Of a DNA stretch of 64,000 bases, positions 8,942-27,800 are shown in pieces; within the stretch, counting starts at the first letter, position 1; each line of letters begins with the position of its first letter. Under the pieces are notes generated by a model. The model was not told where the DNA came from, ran no database searches, and saw only the letters and a program-made list of their open reading frames with translations. Source of the stretch: Oopsacas minuta (Eukaryota; Animalia; Porifera); contig JAKMXF010000300.1 of NCBI GenBank assembly GCA_024704765.1, positions 124,001 through 188,000 on the forward strand, written 5' to 3'. A program made the position numbers and the translations under genes.

Positions 8942-9215
8942 TTCTACCCTATTAGTATTTACTTATTCGATCTCAGCATTTATTAACTTGAAACAAATTA
9001 ACTGTGTACACTTATTTCCTTCCTCTTCGCATTTCTATTCCGATTCTTTTTAGAATCACACATACTAGTGCCATACTGGGGAGTACGCCTTTCTAAAAAT
9101 AACTTACGTACGTACTTATAAACTGGTTAAGAGTAATTAATTAACTATAATCGTGAACTGTATGGCTCAGGCTATAATAGTATGTATATCATGTATCAAT
9201 TTATTGAAATTTCGA

Positions 9216-9373
9216 TAGGGTTACCGTGGGTACGGAATTCCCATTCCCACAGGTAATCCCATAGTAAGAAAGAATTCCCATTTGGATAGCAACCTTGAAA
9301 AAAACTGTATTTTCCCATATGGAAATCCCATATCAAGAAATGGTTGCAATTCTCATTTCCTACGGTAACCCAT
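9216..9373. mobile_element. MITE-like element with TAGGG-type TIR and internal TTCCCAT subterminal repeats
   Basis: TAGGGTTACCGT at 9216 and ACGGTAACCCAT ending at 9373 (10-bp exact IR GGGTTACCGT); several (A/T)TCCCA(T) motifs inside; no TSD seen. Confidence 0.55.
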
Positions 9374-9821
9374 GATAAAAGTGTATTGAGAAGTTTTACT
9401 TTACCGAATCGTCTGCTACAGCCAATTCTATACGAACACAAGCACATATCAATGTACTTAATCTTAATTGTACAAGTTTTAATGACAAATATGTTATTGA
9501 TATTCGTTCGCTCTTATTGTGTGCTATGTTTTCTTTCATAATTGTAACATTTATCCTTGTATGGTACTACGTAATGAGAAAATATGTTCAAATATTATTA
9601 ATTGCGACATACACTTGTATGCAACTTTTTAAGAAATTATGTATTAGCTAGTACCAAATCGTGAATCTACTGATCAGGTCATTTACTGGTCTACGCAAGT
9701 GACATTGTAACTGGTGATGTGTACTTCTTCTCGGGAGAGTATAAATAGTTAAAAGACTTGTATATGTTCTCAGAATTGCTTCATCTAATTATCTAATTTC
9801 TATATCAAATACACTAGCAAA

Positions 9822-12800
9822 ATGACAAAATTGATTTGTAGATTTGTTTGTGTTATTTTATTTGCATACATTTCACAGGTAATGAGTTTATTATACAAAG
9901 TTATCGTTTCATATTTTAAGAGTATTTTTCTCCAGTTCGCCAATGCTGAGATCCACCAGAAGGGATACTGTACATGGTATGGACAATGCGGACCAGGTTC
10001 CAATGGTGGTAAACTAAACTGCTACTACAATGGACCCGCTATTCATCAACCAAAGAGTTCTTCAGTTTTCCAAAAACTTCTTGATCTTTGTCCCAGTATG
10101 ATTAATGCTGATAATCCTTCAGATACAAGAGTGTGTTGTGATTTGAAACAACTTGAAACACTCGATGACTCAATTCTACTACCTAGACAGCTTCTAGCAA
10201 GATGTCCTGCTTGTTTAGCCAATTTTGTTGATCTGTTTTGTCGTGCAACTTGCTCACCTGACGGCTCGACATTCCAACAACCCGTAGTTGTAAATATGAC
10301 AAATGGTACGCAAGAGGTTAAATCCACAACTATGTATTTGGATCCAACAACTGTGAACCAATTTTTCACATCATGTAAAGACGTAAATTTCCCTCAAGGC
10401 AATGGAAAGGTAAAAACATACAATCAACTCCCATTATTTCGAAAATAACCGGTTTAGAACACTTATATACACAATTTAGAACTTCAAATAATGACGTGTT
10501 TCGATATAACGGAAGTTGACTGTAGTATTTTAATAAATCGATATTTATATAGTTTTATTTCTAATTTTAGGCTTTAAGCTTGCTATGTGGGACTAGTGTA
10601 AAAACATGCAATGGATTGACGTGGTTGAATTTTATGGGAAATGTCGGTAATGGAAATACACCGTTTCCAATCGTATACAAAAACACAACAGATGGTTTGG
10701 GGCCTGGACAGAGTTTGTATAAATACGAGCCGAATTTCTGTAATAAAGTTTATAATAATACGAAATGTTCTTGTCAAGACTGTAGCGCTTCCTGTACAAA
10801 CATTCCTACCATTCCACCTTCACGAAATGTAACTAAGATATTCGGTTTAGGAGCAGATTTGTTCTCAATTATAGTCTCGTATGGCATATTTATTGTTCTA
10901 TTCGTACCAGCTGTTATTCTGTATGGAATAGTTATGTTGTTGATTGAGAGAAACTCAAAATTGTCAACCACAGAAGAAAGAAAAGCCTTGATTGAGAAGA
11001 AAGAAGCTGATGAGATATTCGATCGGAAATACGGTCTTACAAAGCCAGAATGTGGCATATGTGGTATTGGGAACTATTTTGACTATTATCTACGTCTAAG
11101 CTTCTATTATTGGGGATATTTCGTGGCCAAATACCCCTGGGTTATCATTATTGGTGCTTTTGTCATTGTTATACCCCTCTGCGGAGGAATTGGGTTAATG
11201 AAGATCATTACTAATCCTGTTGAGCTATGGTCTGCTCATAATAGCCAGGCTAGACATGAAAAGGATTATTTCGATGAACATTTTGGACCTTTTTACCGTT
11301 CAGAAATGTTGATTTTTACAAGCAAAAATGTGTCTTCTTTTAATCATACGCTACACAAAAGTGTTACTGATGGAGGAAAGAATGTTTCATATAATCACAT
11401 GTTTCAAAAGGAAATTCTACTAGAAGTGAGTTCATATTTACTTGATTTTATGCGATTTTTATTCGATGTTTTTCCTTTTGTAGATATTAGAGATTCAAAA
11501 TAATTTGACTGTCATGAAAGTTCCCTACAAGAACGGTACTATAACGCTTGAAGATATTTGCTATACACCGTTATCGCCTGGGAATACGAATTGCACTATA
11601 ATGAGTGTATTACAGTACTTTCAGAATTCAGAGGGAAAACTTAATTTGACTGCCACTACTGCTAATGATGAGGAAATTAATTATCTAGATCACATTTACA
11701 ATTGTAACAGGTAAGTTATAATTCTGATACGTGCACGGAAATTTTCCGCGAATTCATTAGAATAGGTGACTAAGTTTTTGCCAACTTCAATTATTGATTT
11801 CTCTAATAGGAATCCTACTGGTATTCATGATACTGCTATTCCTATACCTTGTATTGGGCAATTTGGAGGACCTGCTCTTCCTAACCTTATCCTAGGAGGT
11901 TTTGGTGGTGAGTTTAACTTGTTTATTTACAGTAGAACTCGGTTAGTACGTACTTTTCTCCAAAACGGATACCAATTCTAGTATTAATTGTATAGGAAAT
12001 TACGAAGAATATTCGGATAAGACCTAGTGAGGTTAAAGTGTACACATTACGTCTTATCTTAGTTCTATTTCATTATAATCGATCAAAATTACTTCTATCA
12101 TACTCCACAGTAATATTACATACAATTTATAACGTGTAATATGATTATTATTATTATGGCAAACTACTGATTATATTCGTTATTATTAACGTCGGTTAAG
12201 TTTCAATTACACTATGAAATTAATGGAATAGAAAAAGCTGGATAGTAATATGATTTACTATACCAGAAGTTTTCTAATACTCTACTTGTAATTGGGTGTA
12301 CTATTACACAGGCATTTTTCAGGGTAGAATATATCTGGTGAGCGATCGGATGATATGTGGCCTGATCATGTATCCATTTCACTAATTTGGTTGTTAGAAT
12401 ATAGATTATGTTACAGGAAGCTTTTTACTTGTTATATCATATATAGTGGAGTAATCATTAAATCTTAATGGGGATGTGGAACTCAGGATATAAATGGTCT
12501 ATAGCATTCTATACGCTAATGCAATCCCACTAGCTGATTTCTTCTGTTAGTATGTTCAAAGCACTTATTCGGAATATTCATGATGTAATGATATTAACAT
12601 ATTATATTTTTTCGAAATGAACATATTTCCTAGAAATTCATTTTGAAAATTTGTCAAATTGCGCCAATATGACGTCATTGCCTTAATTCTGAATGAACTA
12701 GGTGTCATAGGGAATCCTGTTCCCACGAACATGGGAATACTTTTTCCCGTTTCCTTGATCGTGTTGCTAAGTGTGCAAGGAGAAAGACTCGGAGCAACAG

Positions 12801-15800
12801 GATTACCTCTGACACCGGTTGTATAATGCAATGATGGTAAATAGGAGCGCCCATGTTCATTGACTGGAGTATAATATCTTTTGATTACATAACACATCGA
12901 TTTAGTTCAGAGTTGAATATTATTATTCTATTCCTTTCTAATAGCTGATAAAAATGGTCTTGATCAGTTTGAAGATGCAAGAGCGGTTATTGTCGCGTTT
13001 ACTGTTAAGAACTACATATCTGATGCAGATAACAGTATGGCAGAAGCATGGGAAGCTAAGTAAATACATTCAACTATCCTATCCTATCCCATTTATATGA
13101 ATAATTTATTATTTACAAATATGATAATAGATATTTGGAATATATAAAGAATTATACACAACAGGGAAAGAGTCGTAATAATCTTACAGTTGCATTCTTA
13201 GCAGAGGTAAGACTTGGTTGTCAAGCTTTTTACGTATATACCTGTACTTTAAGTTTTATTTGTATCTCTCAGAGATCATTACAAGATGAATTGGAGAGAG
13301 AATCTGAATCAGATATAGCTACCATCGTAATAAGCTATGCAGTTATGTTCGCTTATATTGTTCTGTTCATTGGAAAGATTCCAAGTTACAAACACTTCTG
13401 CTTTGATTTCTTTGTAAGTTAATACATTTAGAGTGAATTCTATGAGAAATTTACAATTGAAAATTTAAATTTGTATCTTATTTTCATCTACAATTCTGAT
13501 AACTGTTTCATTAATATTTATTTTTAGGTTCGTAGCAAGTTGTTTATCGGTTTCGTTGGAGTATCCATTGTAATACTATCTGTACTCACAAGTATTGGAT
13601 TCGCCTGTTATTATGGAGAACCTTTAACTTTGATTATTGTAGAAGTCCTACCGTTTTTGGTGTTAGCAGTTGGAGTTGATAATATTTTTATCCTGGTGCA
13701 TTCAGTTGAGGTTAGTTACGGACTTATCTATTATTTGTAAGAAATTTTGACATCCAGTGGCTTATCTATCCATCGTGCACTACGTAGTTCACGATCAAGG
13801 GCAGGTTACTAATCAAAAGTTTGGCTCAATTAGTCCCAAAGATTTTTCAAAGATTCAGCAGAAATTTTACTGAATATACAAATTTATTTTCTCTATGAAC
13901 ATGAAACTGTTCGTTGAAAAGATGGAGCAGTTAAGCGAATGATTTTTGCATTATTTGAAAATACTTTAACTATTTATATAGGAGGAGATGTATTCACATT
14001 TCGAAGAGCCGAGATATAAGATAGTTGGCTTAGCATTAAGTAAGGTAGCTCCTAGTATTACATTAACTGCTCTATCTGAAACGGCTGCATTCTTTCTTGG
14101 TAAGTTATAAATATTTGTAGGAAATTTATTGTTGCATCGTGTATGGTGGGCTTTACGCGTAATTACATATGTATCTTGTCTTTAGGAGCTATCTCTTCAA
14201 TGCCTGCATTACGAGCATTCTCATTATTCGCTGGACAAGCTATATTCTTTGACTACCTGTTACAAGTGAGTTGAAATTCCTTTTCACTGAACTCTAGTTT
14301 GTTAGTCATATTATTCAGTTTTCATTTTCCCTATTTTTCAGATTTCACTATTCGTCGCTATCCTATCAATTGATGTAGCAAGACAACAGGTAAGTAGCAT
14401 ACTCACAAATTCACTTAGTTATATGTTACTACAAATACTTCTGAATTTAGGCAAGACGGCCTGAGCTGTGTTGTTGTGTAAGATTAAAGTTACCAGAAGA
14501 ACACAAACCTAATCTCAATGTTAATGATGATGAAAATCCTACTTGTTCACCAGATCACGTGATTAATGAAGGATTTATAAGATATTTTATTAGAACATTC
14601 TACTCACCATTTATACTATTTCCACCTGTAAAGATATTTGTGGTAAGTATTTGAATTTCATTCAATCATTGCTGTCTTAAAATTTACCTCTTTAGATAAT
14701 TATATTTGTTGGTGCATTCCTTATGAGCATTTACGCTACTATGCATCTACCGATTGGCTTGGATCAAACTCTTTCTGTCCCCAAAGTAAGCTATGTTTAG
14801 TTCTCTTTGAATGAATTTATTATCTTTTTGTTTCCTTTTAGGATTCCTATGTAATCACATACTTCGACGCTCTGAACAAGTATCTACATGTGGGTTCTCC
14901 TGTTTATTTTGTAATCAAGGGAGATTATAACTATTCTAGTCAAGCAGGAATGAATAAAGTTAGTTTTTAATACTTTTTTATATTATATATGTTTTGCTTT
15001 ATTTGGCCATTTCCAAAATACATCATTTCTAGCCAAATACATTTTGGTTTATCTGTGACTCCACTCTGTAAATCGGTCAATTATCCTGTGATTATCTTTT
15101 TAACCTCGTAAACAAACAGTCCTTTCTAAATACATTCAGCTCCCGTTATATCGAACTCAAGAGACCGCGATAATTAATACAATATAAGCGCAGCGATATG
15201 AAACACGTATAAGTTACTTTGAAGGTCAGGGACCAAATTTGTACAATATCAGATTCGATATATCCGTGTTCGATATAACTGGAGTTGACTGAATTAGGAA
15301 ATTGGTCCTTAATGACTAGAATATCTACCATCATTATATATTTATTTTTACTATCATTCCTGTAGATATGTACTCAAACTGGTTGTAATGACAATTCTAT
15401 ATTATCTCAAATCGATAATTACGTTCAGATTTCAAACTAGTAAGTCGTTTGTTTGTAATCAATAAATGCGTATTTATGATGTTGTTTAATATTTGTTTGT
15501 TTGTTTAGCTCACGTATTGCAACAAGTCCAAGTTCATGGGTGGATACGTATATTGACTGGCTCAATCCAACTATTCCTTGCTGTCAATACCACCGTCACG
15601 ACCACTCTAAATTCTGTCCTTATTCAGGTATGTCAATTTTACTTATTTCTGAACTTTGGTATATAAATCTCAAATTACATTAGTTAATTATGAACCTTAA
15701 TATGCTCCCATAATCAAGATTTATTTGCCACTATCCTATACAGACTTTTCCATCTTGTTATTAAAATATATTTTCATCAATATCTCCTTTCATATTCTGT

Positions 15801-18800
15801 TTATAAATGGGTGGAGTTTACAGCAAAACGTTGGGTATCAGTTTGCTAGTCCAGTTTGTTAGTTTCATCTTTGCTGCTATCTTAAAAACTGATAAGTTTT
15901 ACGATTTGGTTGGTTCACTAACAACTATCGGGATTGTACTGCTTAACTATCTAACTGGTACAAAATCCTGGCAACAGAAAGTGCAGACTGGAATTATTCT
16001 AGCTTGGGCAATTCGTCTCGGTTCGTATCTTTTCACGCGAACTCTAATAGCTGGAGATTGGCGATTAGATAAAGTTAAGCGAAAGCCGCTCATGTTTTTA
16101 ATGTACTGGACTTTGCAGGGATTGTGGATATTCAATAACTTGTTGCCTACATTGAGTATGCAGGATCATGCTATAATCCCTCTGTCATCGAATAGGGAGT
16201 TGATTGGGTGGGGCGTGGCTGGTGTTGGGCTCCTGCTTGAAGGTATTACAGATATACAAAAGTTTATCTTTCGTATGAAAACTGAGAATAGCGAGAAATG
16301 GTTGGATAAGGGTATCTACAGTATTATCAGGTATCCGAATTATTTGGGAGAAATATTGTATTGGTTTGGTTTGTTCATTTCCGCTTCAAGCAGCTTCACT
16401 ACTAAACGCGAGTATTTGAATTTATTATCGCCTTTATTCACTATCCTACTTCTTACTAGGATATCTGGTATCCCTATGCTTGAAACTAGGAATTATCACC
16501 GATTTCGCGAAAATCCTGAGTATACATCGCATGTAAAGAATACTAACCTGTTGATACCGTATTTGTATTAGGCATCATATTTGTGTTAGATTGTCTACTG
16601 TTTATGTTTGAAATAATATTTTATCTCATAAATAATAAGTTTGTATGGGGAGTATGAAATTTGTGTACAAAACTAGTGTTACGTTTGTGTACAGATATAT
16701 TTGTACACAAACGTTGTACTGTCTGTACACTAATGTCTCCTCCGGTATGTATCAGATTCAATTACCACATGAAAATACTGTATGCAGTTTCTTTTGAAGT
16801 TCGCGTTGTAATTTGTCAGAATTTTCATGACTGAGACTTGACAGAATCAAATATTCTGAATATTGACAACTTCAAAAAATTGACTGATATAGTTTCTGAT
16901 ATCTTCTATGAATTCGCTCTAGTTTTTCATGAAAAAATCTATAAATTTATTATAGTTTGAAGTATGACACCATGACTAGACTATTTTTATGTGTATTTAT
17001 TTAGATGTCAATGTTTCAACTTGCATTTCTTGCTTGGAAGAGGGACAAACTCGACCCAATCCAGAAGAGTTCATGAAATATTTAACATGGTTTCTCTCTG
17101 ATAATCCTGGCACTACGGCTACAGCTTGTACTAAAGGGTATGTTACTATGAGAATATTACATCATATGGATATATTATTGCTATTCGACTAATATTTCCT
17201 ATTTACCTTTACGTAATTAGAACTTTTATCTAATTATATGATTGTCATCTTTAATTGTAGTTTTGAACTCTTCTCAATTTGTAAATTCTTAGGTAATTGT
17301 GGATTATGTATTACAAAATTAAATTATCCTCCACTCTATTTCCCCGAAAATGATGTAATTTTGTGAATACTAGACATGATGTACACGTTGTATATTAGCT
17401 ATACACTTGTCTATAAATATCCGGATAAACACTATTTAAACAATACAAATCTTCTAATTCTTATCTAATGCATATTGATACACTTAGTCTCGTTTACATG
17501 GTGCTGTATGGCATGTTTTCATTTCCATCTTTCTTCCTCTTCTGGACTTGGATTGGTTTCTTAACGAATAGAATATTCCATTATCGTTCAGCTTACAATA
17601 AATTGGTTTCCAAATTGAGTTATCCCGCAGAGTTTAACATCAACGTTTTCAACATGAGAGTCAAATTCATCGTTTATATTTTGCTTCTCCTGATCATATT
17701 TAGTGAGATGCTATGTGCATTGGGATATTTACTAGGGATGTCCATGTTTAACTCTCCTATCGTATCTGCAACTGAAGATCGTCTATTTCCTCTTAATTTC
17801 ACAAAAATACAATGTACGACACAGTATGAATATATTTGGCAAGCCGAGCTAGCATATCCTCTCCTCGCGTTTCTTATGTGTTTAGGAGATGTTTCCATTT
17901 GTATTACTTTCATTCTCATGATTGGGCTGATCAAATTCGTTTTTCTCGCTTATCAATGTAAAACCGATTTTAAAAGTGTGAAAGTCTTCTTTATCAAGGC
18001 TCTGTGTGTTCCTCCTTTCTTACTTTTGATTTCTACCATCCCTCAAACTCAAATATTTTCGAAAATCTTGACACCTATCTTTTGTATTATATTAATTATT
18101 TTACTTTTTAAACACAAAAATCAATATTTTCTGATTTTGAAATGGAGATGTGGTGACGCGTTCTATATCAGAAATTATGCAAACTATATTTCCCAAGTGA
18201 AAACAAGGCGAAATTCCATTATTTCATTCCACTTGTTCCTAATGGCCTATTTTCTTTTCTTCATTGCTTTAATATTTGATAGAACAATCGCATTTATTTG
18301 TATGGTATTCACAGAACAATCACGAAGAGTTACTGCTGTTTATTACTCCGATTTGAATCTGGCATTCCTTGACTGTCATTATCAACGAATCTTCTACAAA
18401 ATCCAGGAAATCGGGGCTTTAATTCAACCAGGTTGTCTGCTAGTCGCTGGGATAATATATATAATACCTTTCTATGCAGTAATGTTTGGTGTACTTGGGT
18501 ATTATCTATATTCGCAGTGTAGAGGTGTAGATTCTCGTTATATTAGGTTTGGAGGCAATTCTCACTTATATCATCCGTTAAGAAACTGAATTGTACTGAT
18601 TATGAATTACTAATAAGATTGGTGAAGGATAGTATTGCTCAAATTTCATTCGATGTTTGTTAATATGTGTATTAGAACATTACTCTGTAATTATTATTAT
18701 TTATATCAGTAATTAAAGATTCTAATTATCCATTTCAATCTGTATCGCACAGTACGTATATGCGAATATACTGAGATGGTAAAATATACAATAATTATTT

Positions 18801-21800
18801 GAATTTTCATACACTTGATTACGGTAATTCGTGATTTTTTCCCGAGTGGATGAATTAATTTGATATTTTGCGCACAACATAAATATTTATATTCAGGGAC
18901 TGGCGATTTTCAACTAGTATCGATACCTCAAACTTTCCCGGATATTATAGATTATATTTTACAAATTAAAATAGCCACACGCTTATAAGTATGATATTTC
19001 TATGTATAACTTAATCCAACACACAATAATATATGCAAAAATAATTAATATGATCAGATTTGCTGATTTCTAACACATTCTTAAACTTATACTTTTGGGA
19101 AATTTTCATCCAAAGTTACCATTTATTCTAGCGGTGATCGATCTGGAATCTCCAATCTTAATATAGACAAGATTTTAATCATTTTCATTAACATTTTAAT
19201 AATACCCTTACGAATCACATTAGTTGATATGTTAGGTAAGGACGCTATTCAATTTGTATAAATAGTTGATGACTTGAATTGTAGTTTATACTTCTCTATA
19301 TTTTGATTGAATAATGGACTTTGAAACTGATCAGATTTTCGTTTTCGTATTCACTTTTGTACTAACAATTCTGTTAATTCCTGTTACAATATTCTGGGTT
19401 GTGTTTGTTAGTATTCGACTCTTCATCTATGTTAGATCCTATCGGAAACTAAATTCCAATATCTACCGCGATACAGCAGAACTTCCTATCACAATTTTCA
19501 ACTTGAAAATTAAAATCGTGATATATTCATTCTTTATCTTCCTTATATTCTTTGAGTTTGTAGCTGTAATCTCGCATATTTCAGGAATGGTCCTTTTATT
19601 CTTTCCATTACATTTCGGACTTGGTTTTCCCGAGATTATTCCAACAAACTGTACATTCAATTACTATGAATTATGGCAGGGTGAATTTTCTAACCGATCC
19701 ATTGCATTATGTATTAGCTTACGTGACGCTTCCTTATGTATAATTTGCATTTTAATCATTGGTATCTTAAAGTTTATCTACGTGGCTTATCAGAATAAAA
19801 CTGATTTCAAAAGTGTGAAGGTTTATCTGGTTAAATGTTCTATTCTTCCTCCAATACTAATAATCCTCTCTATTTTCCCTCAAACTCTGATTATTACCAA
19901 GATAGGTACTCCATTGCTTATCATCATCCTTTTGAGACAGCTGCTAAAACATAAGAAATCATACTTTCTGGTATTAAAATGGCGTTGTGATGATATACGT
20001 AATCAGGGCGATAACAAAGGATACATTTATAGCATGAAAATACGCCAGAACTCCATCATAACATTTAATCTATTCGTATTAGCATATTCGATTCTTTATA
20101 TTTTCATTATTCTAAACAAATCGGCTTCACTGTGTGTTATGCTATTTACGGACCAGTCTAGATATTTGACAGCTGTCTATCATTCAGATTCTAATTTATC
20201 TTTCCTGGGTTGTAAATATCAGAAAATAATATATGCTTTTCATTATATTTTGGATCAGATTGAACCTACAGCTGTTTTGATAGCTTTTATTATATATATG
20301 ATTCTATATTTTGGTGTTACGATTGGATACATTGGTGTATCTCTTTATACACACTGTAAGAGTGTTGATACCAATTATATTAGGTTTGATGGAAATGCTA
20401 GAGAAATCTGTAAATGATTGCAACATGTTTCGAATAATCATTGGATATTTTGTAATTTAAATTCAATTCACTCTTTTGTATTGATTATGTTAACTTCCAG
20501 GAAGTATTGCTATTAAATTTATTACTTATTTCATGTTTATTATTACCCAATCTGAATTGAATATTACCCTTTGGATTTCTTGCTTATCACGTCATAATAT
20601 CACAAACATTGGCGATACTAAAAATAGCTATTTATCACGTTTGAATTATTCTAAAATTTATTACATTATTTGTAAGCTGTTTATGATATATTATTTATAA
20701 TGTCTCTTTTGAATTAATATATTTGTGTTAGAAAGATTTGTTAATTATTTATATTTGTTCTAGAGGACATGCTGCTTATTTTCATGCTGTCGCTGTTAAC
20801 AGTAGCAATAAAATTGAATGTAAGGTTTAACAAAAATCCATATTTATTCATAAATACAATTTTTATATTATACTTATATTATATAGCTTCCTACTTCATG
20901 TCTTATCACACTATCCTAAGAAACTCTGTTGAATTTACTGATGGGTTACGGAAAGCAAGAGAGATCAGTGAGAGTCTAACTACCTCGCTGAATACAACTA
21001 ATGTCACTGTATTTCCCTACAGGTAACTTGAATTCACATTACTTATTCAGGTCTTAGAAATGTGAAACCTCCACAAACTGGCTTGTGGAACGGGGAACTG
21101 AGTGAAAAACATATAGCGAATTCGAGGTCCCATACAAGTGAATCTCCACAAACGGGAAACGGAGTAGCATTTTCGGCGTCCCAAGCACCCCATTTGTGGA
21201 GGTTTCACTGTATGTGTGTTTATCTTTTGTAACAATATAGTGTCTTCTATGTCTTCTATGAGCAATATCTGAATATTCCCCAAGTATCAGTCCTAACCCT
21301 TGGAGTATCAATTAGTGAGTAATCTTTAGCAATCATAATATCTTTAGCAATTCTAATATTTCGTATTATTTCAATAGTTACTATATTTGTGATGACGTTT
21401 ATACTAATCGGATTTAAGCTCTGGTCTACGATACTCGTTACAATGACTGTAATAATGTTCTTGATTGATATGATGGGAATGATGTATTTATGGGGCATAT
21501 CACTCAATGCCTTATCTCTTGTGAATCTTTGTGCTGTAAGTAAATTAGTATTCTATAGTTATCAAAGTTTGGTAGCGATATATCGCTTATGAAACATTGA
21601 AAAATACCATACATTCTGATATTTATCGAAAATTTTCGGTTAATCGGGAACTCTGATTAATTGGGACAAAAATCCTGGAACGAAAGTGTCCCAATTAAAC
21701 GGAGTCGACTGTATTTTGATATTTTAGAAATATCAAACCGATTTTTATTGTATCGAGTAATTTTTCGTTAATCGTGTGGATATCGGAGAAGTTAACAGTG

Positions 21801-22546
21801 ATCGATATTTGCCAAACCTTCCTATAACTATTGATTTGTATTCATAGCTTAATATTTGTATTATTTTAACAGTCAATCGGTATTTCAGTTGAATTCGTAT
21901 CACATATTGTACGCTGGTTTGCATACTCAGATGCTCCCACACGCAAAGAGAGAGCTCATGACGCTCTTGTTAACATGGGATCTTCAGTATTCAGTGGTAT
22001 TACATTAACCAAATTATTTGGTATTCTTGTTCTCGCATTCTCAAAGTCACAATTATTTGAAGTGAGTTTATTGTGTTATGGGTGTGATATTCCAGTTGTT
22101 TATAAACTATTGTTTATTAGGTATTTTATTTCCGGATGTATTTGGGTATTGTTGTTATTGGAGCTACTCATGGACTTGTATTTCTACCAGTTCTCCTCAG
22201 CTATATTGGTATGTTGTTTTGTTGTTGATTAAAGTGATTATTTCCTCCTGTGTAATGAAATTTATTAATTTCACTCCGCTTACAACAAATGAAACCGAGA
22301 TCCTGTGTACTTCTTTGTAATGTGAGTTTACTGTAATTGTGATTACAACGGAAATAATATTGTAGTCGTAGTGTAATTACATTAACATCCGCTTTCTCGA
22401 ACCCTCTGCAATAGAAATTGCTGGTTGCTCGTCATTCTGAGATATCTGTAGTTATTGTCTTATGTTATGCAGGTCCTAGAAGAGCGAAAAACAACCCTCT
22501 AGCAATGAAAGAATCTGGAGTAGACGATGGACTCCATTATGCATAA
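9822..22546 (+). CDS. NPC1: NPC intracellular cholesterol transporter 1, 25 exons: 9822-9878, 9936-10409, 10571-11425, 11484-11710, 11810-11907, 12945-13059, 13131-13206, 13273-13413, 13528-13710, 13982-14099, 14186-14265, 14342-14389, 14451-14642, 14696-14785, 14842-14958, 15366-15439, 15509-15627, 17005-17137, 20764-20819, 20887-21022, 21241-21314, 21378-21535, 21873-22061, 22121-22208, 22473-22546; ~1323 aa
   Basis: All GT-AG and in frame (3972 nt). Signal peptide, Cys-rich NTD ([15 protein letters not shown]), [15 protein letters not shown], sterol-sensing domain ([19 protein letters not shown]), [53 protein letters not shown]. Confidence 0.95.
10421..10522. mobile_element. MITE family A copy (internally deleted) in NPC1 intron 2
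   Basis: ta|caatcaactcccattatttcgaa ... tcgatataacggaagttgactg|ta. Confidence 0.8.
11930..12040. mobile_element. MITE family B copy in NPC1 intron 5
   Basis: ta|cagtagaactcggttagtacg...ttttctccaaaacggata...attcggataa aligns by eye with the reverse complement of 58409-58545. Confidence 0.65.
15133..15291. mobile_element. MITE family A copy in NPC1 intron 15
   Basis: ta|cattcagctcccgttatatcgaactcaagagacc ... gtgttcgatataactggagttgactg. Confidence 0.85.
15807..16571 (+). CDS. DUF1295 / steroid 5-alpha-reductase-like membrane protein, intronless, nested same-strand in NPC1 intron 17
   Basis: 254-aa ORF with family motifs [66 protein letters not shown]. Confidence 0.9.
   Translation: MGGVYSKTLGISLLVQFVSFIFAAILKTDKFYDLVGSLTTIGIVLLNYLTGTKSWQQKVQTGIILAWAIRLGSYLFTRTLIAGDWRLDKVKRKPLMFLMYWTLQGLWIFNNLLPTLSMQDHAIIPLSSNRELIGWGVAGVGLLLEGITDIQKFIFRMKTENSEKWLDKGIYSIIRYPNYLGEILYWFGLFISASSSFTTKREYLNLLSPLFTILLLTRISGIPMLETRNYHRFRENPEYTSHVKNTNLLIPYLY
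17468..18589 (+). CDS. Uncharacterised multi-pass (~7TM) membrane protein, paralog 1, nested same-strand in NPC1 intron 18
   Basis: 373-aa intronless ORF with ~7 hydrophobic segments by eye; colinear with the 19314 ORF ([44 protein letters not shown]). Confidence 0.85.
   Translation: MHIDTLSLVYMVLYGMFSFPSFFLFWTWIGFLTNRIFHYRSAYNKLVSKLSYPAEFNINVFNMRVKFIVYILLLLIIFSEMLCALGYLLGMSMFNSPIVSATEDRLFPLNFTKIQCTTQYEYIWQAELAYPLLAFLMCLGDVSICITFILMIGLIKFVFLAYQCKTDFKSVKVFFIKALCVPPFLLLISTIPQTQIFSKILTPIFCIILIILLFKHKNQYFLILKWRCGDAFYIRNYANYISQVKTRRNSIISFHLFLMAYFLFFIALIFDRTIAFICMVFTEQSRRVTAVYYSDLNLAFLDCHYQRIFYKIQEIGALIQPGCLLVAGIIYIIPFYAVMFGVLGYYLYSQCRGVDSRYIRFGGNSHLYHPLRN
19314..20417 (+). CDS. Uncharacterised multi-pass (~7TM) membrane protein, paralog 2, nested same-strand in NPC1 intron 18
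   Basis: 367-aa intronless ORF with the same motifs as the 17468 ORF. Confidence 0.85.
   Translation: MDFETDQIFVFVFTFVLTILLIPVTIFWVVFVSIRLFIYVRSYRKLNSNIYRDTAELPITIFNLKIKIVIYSFFIFLIFFEFVAVISHISGMVLLFFPLHFGLGFPEIIPTNCTFNYYELWQGEFSNRSIALCISLRDASLCIICILIIGILKFIYVAYQNKTDFKSVKVYLVKCSILPPILIILSIFPQTLIITKIGTPLLIIILLRQLLKHKKSYFLVLKWRCDDIRNQGDNKGYIYSMKIRQNSIITFNLFVLAYSILYIFIILNKSASLCVMLFTDQSRYLTAVYHSDSNLSFLGCKYQKIIYAFHYILDQIEPTAVLIAFIIYMILYFGVTIGYIGVSLYTHCKSVDTNYIRFDGNAREICK
21060..21210. mobile_element. MITE family D copy in NPC1 intron 20
   Basis: 16-bp perfect IR GTGAAACCTCCACAAA (21062-21077) / TTTGTGGAGGTTTCAC (21193-21208), ending ...CACTG|TA. Confidence 0.8.
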
Positions 22547-22828
22547 TCTATTTACATTCGCATGTACTATGTAATCTTTTTATTTACTGATAATATTTGT
22601 ACACATTATTCGTTTAGACCTACTTGTACTATCTTTTTGTTGGACTTTTTGTTCAATGTATTGATCCTTGTAACATATTTACATATCACACCTCAATTAT
22701 TAACTGCTATGACTTTTGCTTGAATATTTATTATAGTAACTCACATACTTACCAACGGAAATTTATAGAATTTTAGACATATTCAGGGATTCCAAGAAAT
22801 GTATCCAAATAGGTTCAAAGGGTTGGTA

Positions 22829-22972
22829 AGTATGGACTCGGATAAGACGTCTCTTCGTGGAACTAAATTATTGTCATAATGTGTATATCTTTTTCCGAAT
22901 AAGATTTGTATCAAATGAATGGGAAAACTTTGGCTTGTGAGAAGAAGTAAAACTGACTTATCTGAGTACTAT
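22829..22972. mobile_element. Degenerate MITE (family E), similar to 35500-35605
   Basis: Shared core aaatgaatgggaa...tgtgag and TIR-like ends ctcggataagac / gacttatctgag. Confidence 0.45.
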
Positions 22973-23040
22973 TTTTATACTCATCTAAGTATTGTGATTA
23001 TTAGATATTCTTCCATAAAGTTAGATTATTAGTAGAGCTT

Positions 23041-25680
23041 ATGTTACAATTCGCCGATTATTTCTTCACACTTTTGAGCTGGACTTATTTTACAAATTCT
23101 GTATCATGTTCTTTTGCTTGTTCCTCAAACTGTACTGTTCTGCCATTGAATGGTAAATGGCTTATCTCTACCAACAATAATACAATTTCTCTACAAGGCA
23201 TAGTCCCTGGTCAAATACACCTTGATTTGCTCAAAGAGAAATTAATCCCAGATCCATATGTTGGTTTTAATGATGATAAACTATCTTGGATACCACTTGA
23301 AGATAAATGGGTTTCCAAACGTAATTTTACTGTAGATTCTAAATTCAAGAAATATGAAAAAGTTTTAATATATTTTGAAGGAATTGATACAATTGCTAGC
23401 GTATTCTTACAAAATGCAGGAATAAAACAGTTCCTATTCAATGCTTCAAATCAACACAGACAATACGTTTATGACGTCACAAACTATATCGTATTAGGGG
23501 ATAATACTCTGATTGTTGAATTACTTAGTGCGGCGAAACTATCACATAAATACGCACTTGAATATCCATATCATGTTGATCAACAATTCACCTATTTTGA
23601 AGGGACTAATAGGAATTTTGTACGTAAGGCACAGTCTGATTTCGGATGGGATTGGGGCCCTGCTTTCGCTCCTGTTGGTATCTGGAAAGATGTTTACATG
23701 GTCGGATTTGATGAGTTCATGATATCTAACTTTGTACCTATTGTGTATTGGAATGATACATACGACTGTTTTGAAGTTAAAATCACAGTGTATATTTCTT
23801 GCACACACAGTTTTAATGGAAAACTTATAGCCGAAATTAAGCATGTTCTGACACATCCCACAGGTATATCTTGTAGCCAAGGAGATTGTGAGGTTGTTAC
23901 GAGCCTATTGGTACCTGTCAACAAAGTGTCACTCTGGTGGCCTAGCGGATATGGAGAACAACAACTCTACGATATTAGCGTTGAAGTATTTGGTGAAAAT
24001 AGATTGAATGCTCATATTATGAAGTGTATTGGTTTCCGTAAGGTAGAACTTATCCAGGAGAAATATCCTGGAGAAGAAGGATTGAGTTTTTATTTTAAAA
24101 TCAATAATTTGTCGATATTCATAAAAGGATCAAATTGGATACCAGCTGATGCTTTTACTGGGCGTGTTACTGCGGAACAAATCGACCGTATATTGACATC
24201 AGCTGTTCTGTCTCATCAGAATATGGTACGAGTTTGGGGTGGTGGTATTTACCAACAAGATGAGTTCTATCAACTATGCAACCGAAAGGGTATTTTGGTA
24301 TGGCAGGAATTCATGTTTGCTTGCTCACTGTATCCTAGAGACGCAATATTCCTCGAGAATGTACATCAAGAGATAAAATTTCAAGTTAGAAGACTTGCAC
24401 ATAATCCTTCCCTAATCCTGTGGAGTGGAAATAACGAGAATCAAGATACAGCTGTCCAGGCAGGCCCCGCAGCGACTGTAGACTACACGTCACTTTATGA
24501 TGACGTCATAAGAAGTACTCTATATCAAGAGGATAATTCTAGGCCTTTCTGGCCGTCTAGTCCTTCTAATGGAGATTTTGTTGTAGATAGAACACGTCAA
24601 CTTTTTGTTCAGAGATGGGGTGATTCACAGAATAATAATTATGGTGATATCCACCGCTATGATTATAATAGCTTATGTACTGATATAAGCAAATATCCAA
24701 GACCTAGATTCATCAGTGAATTCGGGTTTCAGAGCTATCCTTCTATGCTATCACTTCAAAACGTTATCAATGATGTATCTGATCTTGATAATAAATCTCC
24801 ATTCATGTTACATAGACAACATCATCCTAATGGTAATGCTCAATTAGAAACACAAATACAAATGCATTTTATATTACCAGAAAATACGAATAGAATTACA
24901 AGATTTTCTAACTTTATTTTCCTAACACAAATTGTACAAGGTATTTGTATGCAGTCTCAAACGGAACATTATCGTCGTATACGAAATGAGACAGGTCATA
25001 CAATGGGTACACTGTATTGGCAGCTTAATGACATTTGGCAGGCACCAAGTTGGTCTTCTATAGAATATAATGGGAGATGGAAAGTATTGCATTATATGGT
25101 AAAGCGATTTTACTGCCCTATACTGATATCAGGGTATTATATAGATAATACATTGTACGTATATGTTATTAACGATGCGAATAGAGATATTAACATCTAT
25201 GCTAATGTGTATCTTACTCGTTGGAATGGTAAAGTTGTTGATGTGATGAATAATAGTAGCAAAATACAGTCATACTCTTCTATATTGGTGCTTAATGTAA
25301 CTGGAGATTTTGATAAGTGTGGAAGTATCATAGATTGTTATTTTTATATGGAATTGTTTGATGAAGAATTAAAGGAAGTTCTGAGTACAAATTATTATTT
25401 TCCTGTTTCATTTAAGGAAGTTTCATTACCAAAAGCTGAGGTTAAGATTCAAGATTGTTACCGAAAGAATAATAATCAATTTACTATTACTATTTCTTCT
25501 GATGCATTAGCTTTGTACGTATTTCTTGAGACGAAATATTCAGGATATTTTAGTGATAATGCTTTCATAATGAAGTCTGGTACAATTGTTATTGAATTCT
25601 ATTCTTGGACAGAGATTAAGAAGAATGTTTGTCAGTCTATTTCTATCAAATCTATTTCAAATATTTATTCTGAAGAATGA
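23041..25680 (+). CDS. MANBA: Lysosomal beta-mannosidase (GH2), intronless, 879 aa
   Basis: RKAQSDFGWDWGP, KGSNWIPAD, RVWGGG, WQEFMFAC, acid/base WSGNNEN, nucleophile FISEFGFQS, LYWQLNDIWQAPSWSSIEY. Confidence 0.95.
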   Translation: MLQFADYFFTLLSWTYFTNSVSCSFACSSNCTVLPLNGKWLISTNNNTISLQGIVPGQIHLDLLKEKLIPDPYVGFNDDKLSWIPLEDKWVSKRNFTVDSKFKKYEKVLIYFEGIDTIASVFLQNAGIKQFLFNASNQHRQYVYDVTNYIVLGDNTLIVELLSAAKLSHKYALEYPYHVDQQFTYFEGTNRNFVRKAQSDFGWDWGPAFAPVGIWKDVYMVGFDEFMISNFVPIVYWNDTYDCFEVKITVYISCTHSFNGKLIAEIKHVLTHPTGISCSQGDCEVVTSLLVPVNKVSLWWPSGYGEQQLYDISVEVFGENRLNAHIMKCIGFRKVELIQEKYPGEEGLSFYFKINNLSIFIKGSNWIPADAFTGRVTAEQIDRILTSAVLSHQNMVRVWGGGIYQQDEFYQLCNRKGILVWQEFMFACSLYPRDAIFLENVHQEIKFQVRRLAHNPSLILWSGNNENQDTAVQAGPAATVDYTSLYDDVIRSTLYQEDNSRPFWPSSPSNGDFVVDRTRQLFVQRWGDSQNNNYGDIHRYDYNSLCTDISKYPRPRFISEFGFQSYPSMLSLQNVINDVSDLDNKSPFMLHRQHHPNGNAQLETQIQMHFILPENTNRITRFSNFIFLTQIVQGICMQSQTEHYRRIRNETGHTMGTLYWQLNDIWQAPSWSSIEYNGRWKVLHYMVKRFYCPILISGYYIDNTLYVYVINDANRDINIYANVYLTRWNGKVVDVMNNSSKIQSYSSILVLNVTGDFDKCGSIIDCYFYMELFDEELKEVLSTNYYFPVSFKEVSLPKAEVKIQDCYRKNNNQFTITISSDALALYVFLETKYSGYFSDNAFIMKSGTIVIEFYSWTEIKKNVCQSISIKSISNIYSEE

Positions 25681-26114: not shown

Positions 26115-27800
26115 ATGGCCTCTTTTAGACCTCTCTGTAAATATGGTAGCAATTGTTATAGAAAGAACCCAGCACATTTTGTTGAATTCTCTCATTCAGA
26201 TGAAGTTGAAACATTTACAAAACGAAATAGCGTTGAGTTGGAGATAGATAAATCTAACCCAAAAAAAGTTAGAAATAATGATTCTACAAATAATTTAGAT
26301 GTAGCTAAATCTCCAGAATTTGAACTTTACTATTCGAGTTCATCAGATAATTCTGTCTCTCCCAAACATAAAATCGCGACAATTGATTCCTCTGTGACAG
26401 ATACGGAAACAGACTTATCCATAGTCCAAAAACCTCTAATTAGAGAAGATTCATTCGTGGATTCCGCGTACCAAGATTCGAAAAGTCACACTTTTATGTT
26501 TACAACCGTCAATGGTATAAATCCAGAATTCAATGAATATCCGTTAGCTGTTTCATTAGAACAAATTTTATCACAAAACTTTGGTGATATAAATGCATTA
26601 ATACTATTCAGCTATATGGTAGATATAGATTGGCTACTGGAACAACTCCCAAAGTCAAAACTTAATATCCCAATTCTTATTGTTGTCAAATTCGATAAAG
26701 GACTTCTTAAAAGTTTTCAGGAACAATTCCTCGCTTTCCCAAATATTAAATTTTTCTCTCCTAACCTCCCAATACCGTATGGAACACATCATACTAAAAT
26801 GCTGCTTATATTTTATCCAGATGGGATGCGTGTTGTGATTACGACTGCTAATTTTATACCAGTTGATTGGTCTCAGAAAACACAGGGAGTTTGGATAAGT
26901 CCACATTTTCCTATGGGAGAAAGCAAGGTTGAATCACTGTCTCCTTTCCAAATGGATTTAATTGAATATCTACAGGCATATCAAGCTAAAGTATTCGATT
27001 TCTCAATTGAAAAGATTCTGAAACATGAAATGCAAAATATCACAGTTAGATTGATCGCTTCTATTCCAGGCTATCATAAAGGTAGTGAGCTACAGAAATG
27101 GGGGCATTTGAAAATGAAAAGAGTTTTACAACAAATTAAATCAAAAGAAGTGAAAAGTGATTGGCCGTTAATAGCCCAGTTTTCTAGTATTGGATCTTTA
27201 GGAAAATCTCCAGAATGGTTAGAAAGTGAATGGAAACAAAGTTTTACCCATTCTTCATCTCATACTCCATTATCCATAGTGTTTCCTACTGTAGAGAACG
27301 TAAGAACTAGTTTAGAAGGTTATAGCGCAGGAAAATCGATTCCTTACAACTCAAAAACTTGCAAAAATCAACTATATTTAAATAGATATCTACACCAATG
27401 GAACAGTAGTCGCTACGGGAGATCTCGCGCTTCTCCACACATTAAAACATACATGCGATGTTCACCTGATTGTTCCTCGCTAGCTTGGTTATTACTCACG
27501 TCTGCTAACCTGTCAAAAGCCGCGTGGGGTACTCTACAGAAGGACGACTCTCAGTTTATGATTCGATCCTACGAACTAGGGGTATTATTCCTACCACAGG
27601 ATCAGGTCACGCCTCTAGAATCTTACCCCGTATCAGAACCAAGTGATGATATTTCGCTATACTATGCCAGGAGAGATAGTGTATTGATTCCTATTGACTT
27701 ACCGCTAGTTGATTATCAAAAGACTGATGAACCATGGATTGTCGATTTCTCTTATTCAAAGCCTGATACACATGGTAGGAAATATCCATATAGCATGTAA
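26115..27800 (+). CDS. TDP1: Tyrosyl-DNA phosphodiesterase 1 with an N-terminal PBZ-type zinc finger, intronless, 561 aa
   Basis: Two HKN motifs (GTHHTKM...TANF; PHIKTY...SANLSKAAWG), SYELGVLF; N-terminal CKYGSNCYRKNPAHFVEFSH = C-x5-C-x6-H-x5-H. Confidence 0.95.
   Translation: MASFRPLCKYGSNCYRKNPAHFVEFSHSDEVETFTKRNSVELEIDKSNPKKVRNNDSTNNLDVAKSPEFELYYSSSSDNSVSPKHKIATIDSSVTDTETDLSIVQKPLIREDSFVDSAYQDSKSHTFMFTTVNGINPEFNEYPLAVSLEQILSQNFGDINALILFSYMVDIDWLLEQLPKSKLNIPILIVVKFDKGLLKSFQEQFLAFPNIKFFSPNLPIPYGTHHTKMLLIFYPDGMRVVITTANFIPVDWSQKTQGVWISPHFPMGESKVESLSPFQMDLIEYLQAYQAKVFDFSIEKILKHEMQNITVRLIASIPGYHKGSELQKWGHLKMKRVLQQIKSKEVKSDWPLIAQFSSIGSLGKSPEWLESEWKQSFTHSSSHTPLSIVFPTVENVRTSLEGYSAGKSIPYNSKTCKNQLYLNRYLHQWNSSRYGRSRASPHIKTYMRCSPDCSSLAWLLLTSANLSKAAWGTLQKDDSQFMIRSYELGVLFLPQDQVTPLESYPVSEPSDDISLYYARRDSVLIPIDLPLVDYQKTDEPWIVDFSYSKPDTHGRKYPYSM

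Follow-up and report, generated by a model that had tools for sequence, protein, structure and literature searches.

Glass sponges are rich in genes that lie inside the introns of other genes. The annotation of A. vastus holds 2432 such nested genes, 12.4% of its genes and many of them conserved; that of Oopsacas minuta lists only 83, which the authors attribute to the annotation method (PMC10282587). In mouse and human, pairs of host and nested genes show a slight bias toward opposite orientation, and the correlation of their expression is independent of orientation (PMC11694760). Packed genes on one strand are also known from the spliced-leader operons of nematodes, tunicates, and chaetognaths, and a candidate spliced leader of about 37 nt has been reported in A. 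vastus, where just 4% of the long cDNA reads bore it and no single sequence dominated (PMC10282587). Here we describe a locus of O. minuta at which three intronless genes lie on the + strand inside two adjacent introns of the gene for NPC1, itself on the + strand (9822..22546). The locus is in a stretch of 64,000 nucleotides, the window (assembly GCA_024704765.1, contig JAKMXF010000300.1, positions 124,001 to 188,000), and all coordinates are those of the window unless another contig or locus is named. In our assessment these are probably autonomous genes with intronic promoters of their own, not an operon, and the locus is a further instance of the nested-gene-rich architecture of glass sponges rather than a new mechanism.

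The nested genes known from A. vastus and O. minuta resemble those described here in that an intronless gene lies wholly in an intron of a multi-exon host and is conserved between hexactinellids, within a compact genome rich in single-exon genes; glassin is the published example (PMC10282587). What sets the present locus apart is that a gene family evolving in tandem shares a single intron. Same-orientation pairs of mammals and flies, such as OMP in CAPN5, likewise consist of an independent unit on the host strand across which the host splices, and a further likeness is that expression of host and nested gene is generally uncoupled (PMC11694760). The O. minuta locus is denser than these, with three genes in 5 kb of introns of a 12.7-kb host and spacers of 180 to 720 nt. 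With spliced-leader operons it shares packed same-strand genes and a lineage with a reported leader, but the genes sit within a host's introns instead of following the host in series, no acceptor adjoins their start codons, and each has a TATA box or upstream element of its own where an operon would have a single upstream promoter. A first-pass annotation of this DNA had pointed to the three genes and assumed that most nested genes are antisense to their hosts, which overstates the case: the orientation bias in mammals is only slight (PMC11694760), and glass sponges are rich in nested genes (PMC10282587). The O. minuta genome paper makes no mention of nested genes or NPC1, and a text search of both glass-sponge genome papers found no description of an NPC1 gene hosting this combination of nested genes.

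The host gene has about 24 exons, with its ATG at 9822 and its stop codon at 22544-22546, as mapped by exon-by-exon searches of its coding segments against Pfam, against PDB entries 3jd8 and 5u73, and by tblastn against syntenic loci. Upstream exons matched the Pfam families NPC1_N (137 bits), NPC1_MLD (42 bits), and Sterol-sensing (68 bits). The exons around the nested genes, all on the + strand, are collinear with human NPC1. The exon 5' of the first nested gene (15509..15627) aligned over 15510-15626 with human residues 934-967 in the PDB search. The exon between the nested genes (17005..17137) aligned over 17007-17135 with residues 979-1009 of NPC1 and 992-1022 of NPC1L1 and is kept in the related loci L001, L002, L004, L005, and L006. 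The exon 3' of the nested genes (20764..20819) is followed by another (20887..21022) that aligned over 20889-21020 with human residues 1036-1081 (E 2.6e-6). Reading phases fit at both joints: G at 15627 and AT at 17005-17006 form Asp, and GG at 17136-17137 and A at 20764 form Gly, completing the peptide K-G-G-H-A-A-Y. The two host introns, 15628..17004 (1377 nt) and 17138..20763 (3626 nt), both have GT..AG ends, beginning with GTATGT and closing with a pyrimidine-rich tract and AG, while the remaining NPC1 introns are mostly 40 to 400 nt long; the one of about 1 kb at 11931-12983 was examined and contained no convincing additional gene. The exons that the first-pass annotation had linked in phase are thus real, on the evidence of collinearity, phase, the completed peptide, and RNA joints. 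Its exon numbers of 17, 18, and 19 are approximate, as our map counts them as about 16 to 18, a discrepancy with no effect on the finding.

Read data for the locus come from four public runs of one sample, three of them DNA-like (X1-X3) and one RNA-like (X4). The O. minuta genome paper reports Illumina RNA-seq, DNA-seq, Nextera mate-pair, and PacBio data, and X4 was judged RNA-like from its splice joints, TruSeq adaptor ends, very uneven depth, and the statement in that paper that RNA-seq was made. Depths given here for this run are means per contig, which indicate presence and rough contrast but not transcript ends or ranks. In the RNA-like run, one contig (depth 35) joins 15627 to 17005 and so skips exactly the 1377 nt of the first intron, two contigs (depth about 6700) join 17137 to 20764 across exactly the 3626 nt of the second, and another joint, 20819 to 20887, skips 67 nt; all three have GT..AG ends. 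In addition, a loose end at 15439 goes on with the first bases of exon 15509..15627. No such splice joint occurs at the locus in the DNA-like runs, whose depth is even and whose long contigs follow the window colinearly (a single contig of 5988 nt, for instance, takes in 16685-21200) and break only at a 30-nt repeat, 16685-16714. NPC1 is therefore neither split nor mis-assembled: the RNA joints fall where the first-pass annotation had predicted them, and the DNA is contiguous with the assembly.

RNA contigs over the nested genes stand above intron background. Depth over the open reading frame (ORF) of the first nested gene is 989-1727, compared with 51-63 elsewhere in that intron, and it drops from about 900 to about 50 just past the stop codon. 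In the second intron, contigs 17314-18452, 18423-19736, and 19762-20792 reach depths of 182-239, whereas the start of that intron has 32. Bins over NPC1 exons sum to about 9000-25000, and host exons and nested genes are more than tenfold apart in contig depth. At every true splice site the contigs of this run break, some 29 nt inside the exon, yet they cross the 5' region of each nested gene without a break, and none of the loose ends listed for the run falls in those regions. No joint connects an NPC1 exon with a nested ORF. The three intact + strand ORFs of 254, 373, and 367 amino acids thus lie where they had been placed, each within one intron across which the host splices, and they are real, selected, and transcribed genes.

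Nested gene 1 (15807..16571, + strand) is an intronless ORF of 254 codons that matches the DUF1295 family (PF06966) over profile positions 2-235 of 235 (E 3.3e-39; 135.2 bits against a cutoff of 20.4), and its product is predicted to be a membrane enzyme-like protein. DUF1295 belongs to the clan of steroid 5-alpha-reductases and ICMT, and weak secondary Pfam matches to Steroid_dh, ICMT, and PEMT fall in the same clan; the match to steroid 5-alpha-reductase (PF02544) reached 23.5 bits, with a cutoff of 22.6, over a partial stretch only. The sole PDB similarity was a short C-terminal PNYLGE-type motif in common with the bacterial SRD5A 7c83 (E 0.48). The O. minuta gene is like DUF1295 and its clan in its full-length domain match and in this motif; what distinguishes it is that in this lineage the gene is intronless and sited inside NPC1. 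The family is widespread in bacteria, plants, and invertebrates, with no member of demonstrated substrate, and the searchable literature yielded no substrate or characterization for it. Orthologs are 67-81% identical and occupy the same intron position in five other loci, with a ratio of nonsynonymous to synonymous substitutions (dN/dS) of 0.06-0.14 where dS was estimable, synonymous sites being otherwise saturated, and the gene is under strong purifying selection.

Nested genes 2 and 3 (17468..18589, 373 amino acids, and 19314..20417, 367 amino acids, both + strand) are intronless paralogs, 42% identical over 346 residues, that are predicted to encode orphan seven-transmembrane (7TM) proteins. 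The former, first in the intron, belongs to orthogroup A and is covered by RNA contig 17314-18452; the latter, last in the intron, belongs to orthogroup B and is covered by 18423-19736 and 19762-20792. Nested gene 2 has 30 homologs at 37-58% identity. Neither gene had a Pfam match, and the 7tm family PF00001 matched none of 28 members and 10 distant relatives. A profile search of 1.84 billion representatives returned 55 proteins at E ≤0.001, all from eukaryote-like assemblies and none with a Pfam domain, while a feature search of the ESM Atlas with the 373-residue protein gave sub-threshold matches only. The family is small and, on this evidence, restricted to glass sponges. An AlphaFold (AF2) model built from 28 sequences has seven long helices, with a pLDDT (predicted local distance difference test) of 85 and a pTM (predicted template modeling score) of 0.82. 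Its top Foldseek matches were class A G protein-coupled receptors (GPCRs), with E-values of only 0.02-0.1. In VIA-align, the predicted bundle superposed on class A GPCRs including P2Y14, P2Y12, GPR34, and NTSR1 over about 260 residues (Z 14.5-16.1; root-mean-square deviation about 4 Å), a result that shows the fold but not GPCR membership, as Z near 14 is possible for helical bundles generally. The best structural match in the Atlas was a GPR143-like cluster (TM score 0.55). The family is intronless and tandemly duplicated, like many receptor families, but it differs from class A GPCRs in that none of the 28 members matches Pfam 7tm_1 and no clear DRY, CWxP, or NPxxY motif stands out in its invariant residues. 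It is thus best described, from its modeled seven-helix fold, as a GPCR-like orphan family and not as proven GPCRs.

All 24 copies of this family in the syntenic loci are intact ORFs of 342-394 amino acids, and close pairs have dN/dS of 0.4-0.8; the family thus evolves fast, still with dN/dS below 1. The only other good copy in O. minuta lies on another contig (C33, 736186-737286; L008:7181-8287, - strand), with 39% identity and a TATATAT about 50 nt 5' of its ATG. Between 19017 and 21079, the assembly differs from the runs covering each place by seven single bases and two 1-nt insertions, which are polishing errors of the assembly or another haplotype; one of these differences, at 19564 in nested gene 3, is nonsynonymous (A84V).

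The first-pass annotation called for a check of the nesting in related species, where it proved to be conserved. Starting from homologs of the nested proteins, we reached five long syntenic loci in four other assemblies as well as a short Logan contig, and the same nesting was found in L001/L002, L003 (partial), L004, L005, and L006, with the NPC1 3' exons of L006 beyond the end of the stretch compared. According to tblastn maps, the common order is CEP44, NPC1 5' exons, DUF1295, small NPC1 exon, 7TM copies, NPC1 3' exons, beta-mannosidase, and TDP1, and the number of 7TM copies per NPC1 intron ranges from two to at least five. In a maximum-likelihood tree, one clade (support 99/98) comprises the first O. 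minuta copy, the copy that comes first in L005, and an expansion to ten copies in L001/L002, and another (support 100/100) comprises the second O. minuta copy and the last-in-intron copies of L001, L002, L004, and L005; a third clade holds the middle copies of L004 and L005 and has no O. minuta member. Because orthogroups in this tree are positional, at least two or three 7TM copies were already in this intron in the common ancestor, and the number of copies changed later by tandem duplication and loss. Synonymous sites are saturated, which indicates that the sampled lineages are old, and the layout is older than the split of at least five of them. Two further observations concern this history. 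Among extra 7TM copies downstream of NPC1 in L002, the last NPC1 exons recur in a partial second copy (L002:11753-12255), which shows that tandem duplication of the 7TM array dragged host exons along, and a C-terminal 7TM fragment of about 90 amino acids with 44% identity in the NPC1 intron of L004 (L004:11251-11520) is probably a decaying copy.

Each nested gene is preceded by a sequence element that keeps its distance from the start codon. Upstream of DUF1295, two blocks, TCTCRNRTTAC and CCATAAT, occur 70-140 nt 5' of the ATG in all five aligned loci, even though synonymous divergence among them is saturated; in O. minuta the element (TCTCAAATTAC ... CCATAAT, 15668..15714, + strand) lies 93-139 nt 5' of the ATG. 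Its distance to the ATG is stable, while the NPC1 donor site lies anywhere between about 65 and 270 nt away. With only three occurrences of the composite in the 61-Mb genome, the element is gene-specific rather than a general motif, and it is a putative promoter. The 7TM genes carry instead a TATAAATA box, at 17412..17419 for nested gene 2 and at 19257..19264 for nested gene 3 (both + strand), 56 and 57 nt, respectively, 5' of the ATG. TATAWAW was found at -75 to -30 in 18 of 24 7TM copies against 5.5% of control noncoding windows of the same loci, and in 14 of 17 copies when the near-duplicate L002 was left out, with a sharp peak at -60 to -45. The nominal p-value of this enrichment is inflated, since the copies are related, but noncoding sequence is saturated between the species, and the retention of a TATA box at a fixed distance nonetheless argues for function. 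At the 3' ends, canonical AATAAA or ATTAAA signals occur irregularly after the 7TM genes. A scan for bacterial-type promoters and terminators was uninformative (33 sites against 34.6 expected), and an Rfam search of 9000-23500 gave no match.

The start codons of the nested genes also differ from those of their neighbors. Of the other gene starts in the window with ORFs of at least 200 amino acids, 13 of 14 have an AG within 12 nt 5' of the ATG, the nearest being 4 nt away in NPC1, 3 in the mannosidase gene, 1 in TDP1, and 9 in CEP44, a signature that fits spliced-leader acceptors. For nested genes 1, 2, and 3 the nearest upstream AG is 63, 69, and 29 nt away. Across species, the 12 nt before the ATG include an AG in only 6 of 20 nested copies, the background frequency being 47%; as a cross-species rule, avoidance of AG is weakly supported, as some nested copies elsewhere have an AG adjoining the ATG. 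Most genes of this genome seem to have a trans-splice acceptor directly before the start codon. One might propose that same-strand nested genes have been selected to lack an upstream 3' splice site, and use TATA-type promoters and unspliced leaders instead, because the upstream donor of the host would use such an acceptor in cis and truncate the host. We regard this proposal as rather doubtful; if it were true, loss of the acceptor would be a rule for how dense same-strand nesting is tolerated.

Taken with the unbroken RNA contigs, the TATA boxes and upstream elements and the missing near-ATG acceptors lead us to favor separate intronic promoters over processing of host pre-mRNA, and promoters of their own are most likely for the nested genes. 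The 7TM genes would be transcribed from a TATA box about 55 nt 5' of the ATG and DUF1295 from the conserved element about 95-140 nt 5' of its ATG, with each transcript probably ending inside the intron. NPC1 pre-mRNA would read through all three, and the nested genes would be removed with the introns at ordinary GT..AG sites. Strong upstream donors suppress nearby intronic poly(A) sites, and definition of a terminal exon uses a nearby cap or an upstream 3' splice site. We infer from this that NPC1 escapes truncation because an intronless nested gene offers neither an upstream 3' splice site nor a nearby cap to define a terminal exon, and that the strong GTATGT donors nearby would favor host read-through past intronic 3'-end signals. 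The first-pass annotation had reasoned that same-strand nesting must call for a special resolving mechanism, a conclusion that finds no support in the elements upstream of each gene, the distance of the acceptors, and the continuity of RNA contigs at the 5' ends.

Several observations weigh against autonomous intronic genes and bear on the alternatives. The sole RNA data are the assembled contigs of one run, the kind of which is not on record, and the start or end of a nested mRNA is not directly seen in them. The joint between 15627 and 17005 is supported by the single contig of low depth noted above; AATAAA and ATTAAA are absent within 250 nt 3' of DUF1295 in every species checked; and spliced-leader trans-splicing has been reported in glass sponges (PMC10282587). 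Moreover, an RNA contig of depth 549 spans NPC1 exon, intron, and DUF1295 without a break (15598-15931), and there may be some read-through or intron-retained RNA across this interval. This contig, which joins the NPC1 exon to the DUF1295 ORF, together with the fall in depth just past the DUF1295 stop codon, could be taken to mean that the RNA over DUF1295 comes largely from an NPC1 transcript cut short by polyadenylation at the DUF1295 3' end, with the intron retained. We think this highly unlikely. The mean of 549 fits about 150 positions at background combined with about 120 positions at ORF depth, which would put a start site in 15750-15790, and the conserved element follows the DUF1295 ATG, not the donor site. 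On a truncated NPC1 RNA, DUF1295 would be preceded by about 970 codons of open frame, with the stop at 15683, and scanning would not lead to its translation. Its ORF is nevertheless under strong purifying selection. An operon-like arrangement, in which the nested mRNAs are cut from NPC1 pre-mRNA or the excised intron by spliced-leader trans-splicing and polyadenylation and share the NPC1 promoter, would accord with the A. vastus leader, with the AG close to the ATG at most other gene starts of the window, and with the single orientation of all genes at the locus. Co-orientation is the local norm, as 17 of the 19 ORFs of at least 200 amino acids in this AT-rich window (GC 0.31-0.39) are on the + strand. 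The nested ATGs lack the near acceptor, the 7TM ATGs have TATA boxes at a fixed distance, the RNA contigs that break at every real splice site do not break over the three 5' regions, and host exons and nested genes differ widely in contig depth, so that we give such processing equally little credence.

Another explanation would give the nesting a function, with DUF1295 kept in NPC1 because both act in one coregulated sterol pathway; the first-pass annotation had seen in the locus a candidate coregulated, sterol-linked mini-operon. Retention of DUF1295 inside NPC1 in all sampled relatives, despite saturated dS, speaks for such a module, as do the weak Steroid_dh matches and the PNYLGE-type motif. 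But a gene resident in an intron can hardly relocate without damage to its host, and synteny in any case extends to about half of the genes of glass sponges (PMC10282587); conservation of the nesting thus needs no functional link, given a gene trapped in the intron of an essential host and extensive microsynteny. DUF1295 is without a known substrate, and its ortholog in the annelid Owenia, which carries introns, was checked for an ancient linkage and had no NPC1 within 10 kb. DUF1295 also has its own regulatory element, and the 7TM genes have no connection to sterols, which leaves clan membership with steroid reductases as all that stands behind the mini-operon and makes a sterol module very improbable. 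That the layout is an artefact, a mis-assembly or ORFs open by chance, might be suspected from the break of the DNA contigs at the 30-nt repeat, but this is refuted: the order is unchanged in five independent loci of four other assemblies, both introns are bridged by RNA joints, and every species has intact ORFs whose dN is far lower than dS. Autonomous nested genes with intronic promoters therefore remain our preferred explanation.

A few other features of the locus were noted. The 30-mer 16685-16714 is part of a short palindromic repeat (16664-16730) 3' of DUF1295; it recurs elsewhere in the genome, and at it all three DNA-like runs branch with loose ends. The NPC1 intron that follows exon 20887..21022 holds an element of about 170 nt (21050-21220) with terminal inverted repeats, GTGAAACCTCCACAAA ... 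TTTGTGGAGGTTTCAC, that resembles a miniature inverted-repeat transposable element in that at least 40 copies, 70-84% identical, are scattered in the genome; DNA contigs break at its edges. Downstream of NPC1 lie a single-exon beta-mannosidase gene with GH2 domains (23041-25680, 879 amino acids) and a TDP1-like gene (26115-27800), syntenic in all relatives.

The locus provides a clean, RNA-supported, and deeply conserved case of same-strand nesting in a group of animals where nesting is already common, and it sets right the notion that an exotic mechanism is required for such nesting. With only 83 nested genes in the published O. minuta set, genes of this kind are evidently easily missed or fused, which gives the case some value for annotation. 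It also flags a GPCR-like family, restricted to glass sponges, that has evolved by tandem duplication within an intron, and it offers a concrete locus for asking how intronic promoters and 3' ends coexist with splicing of the host.

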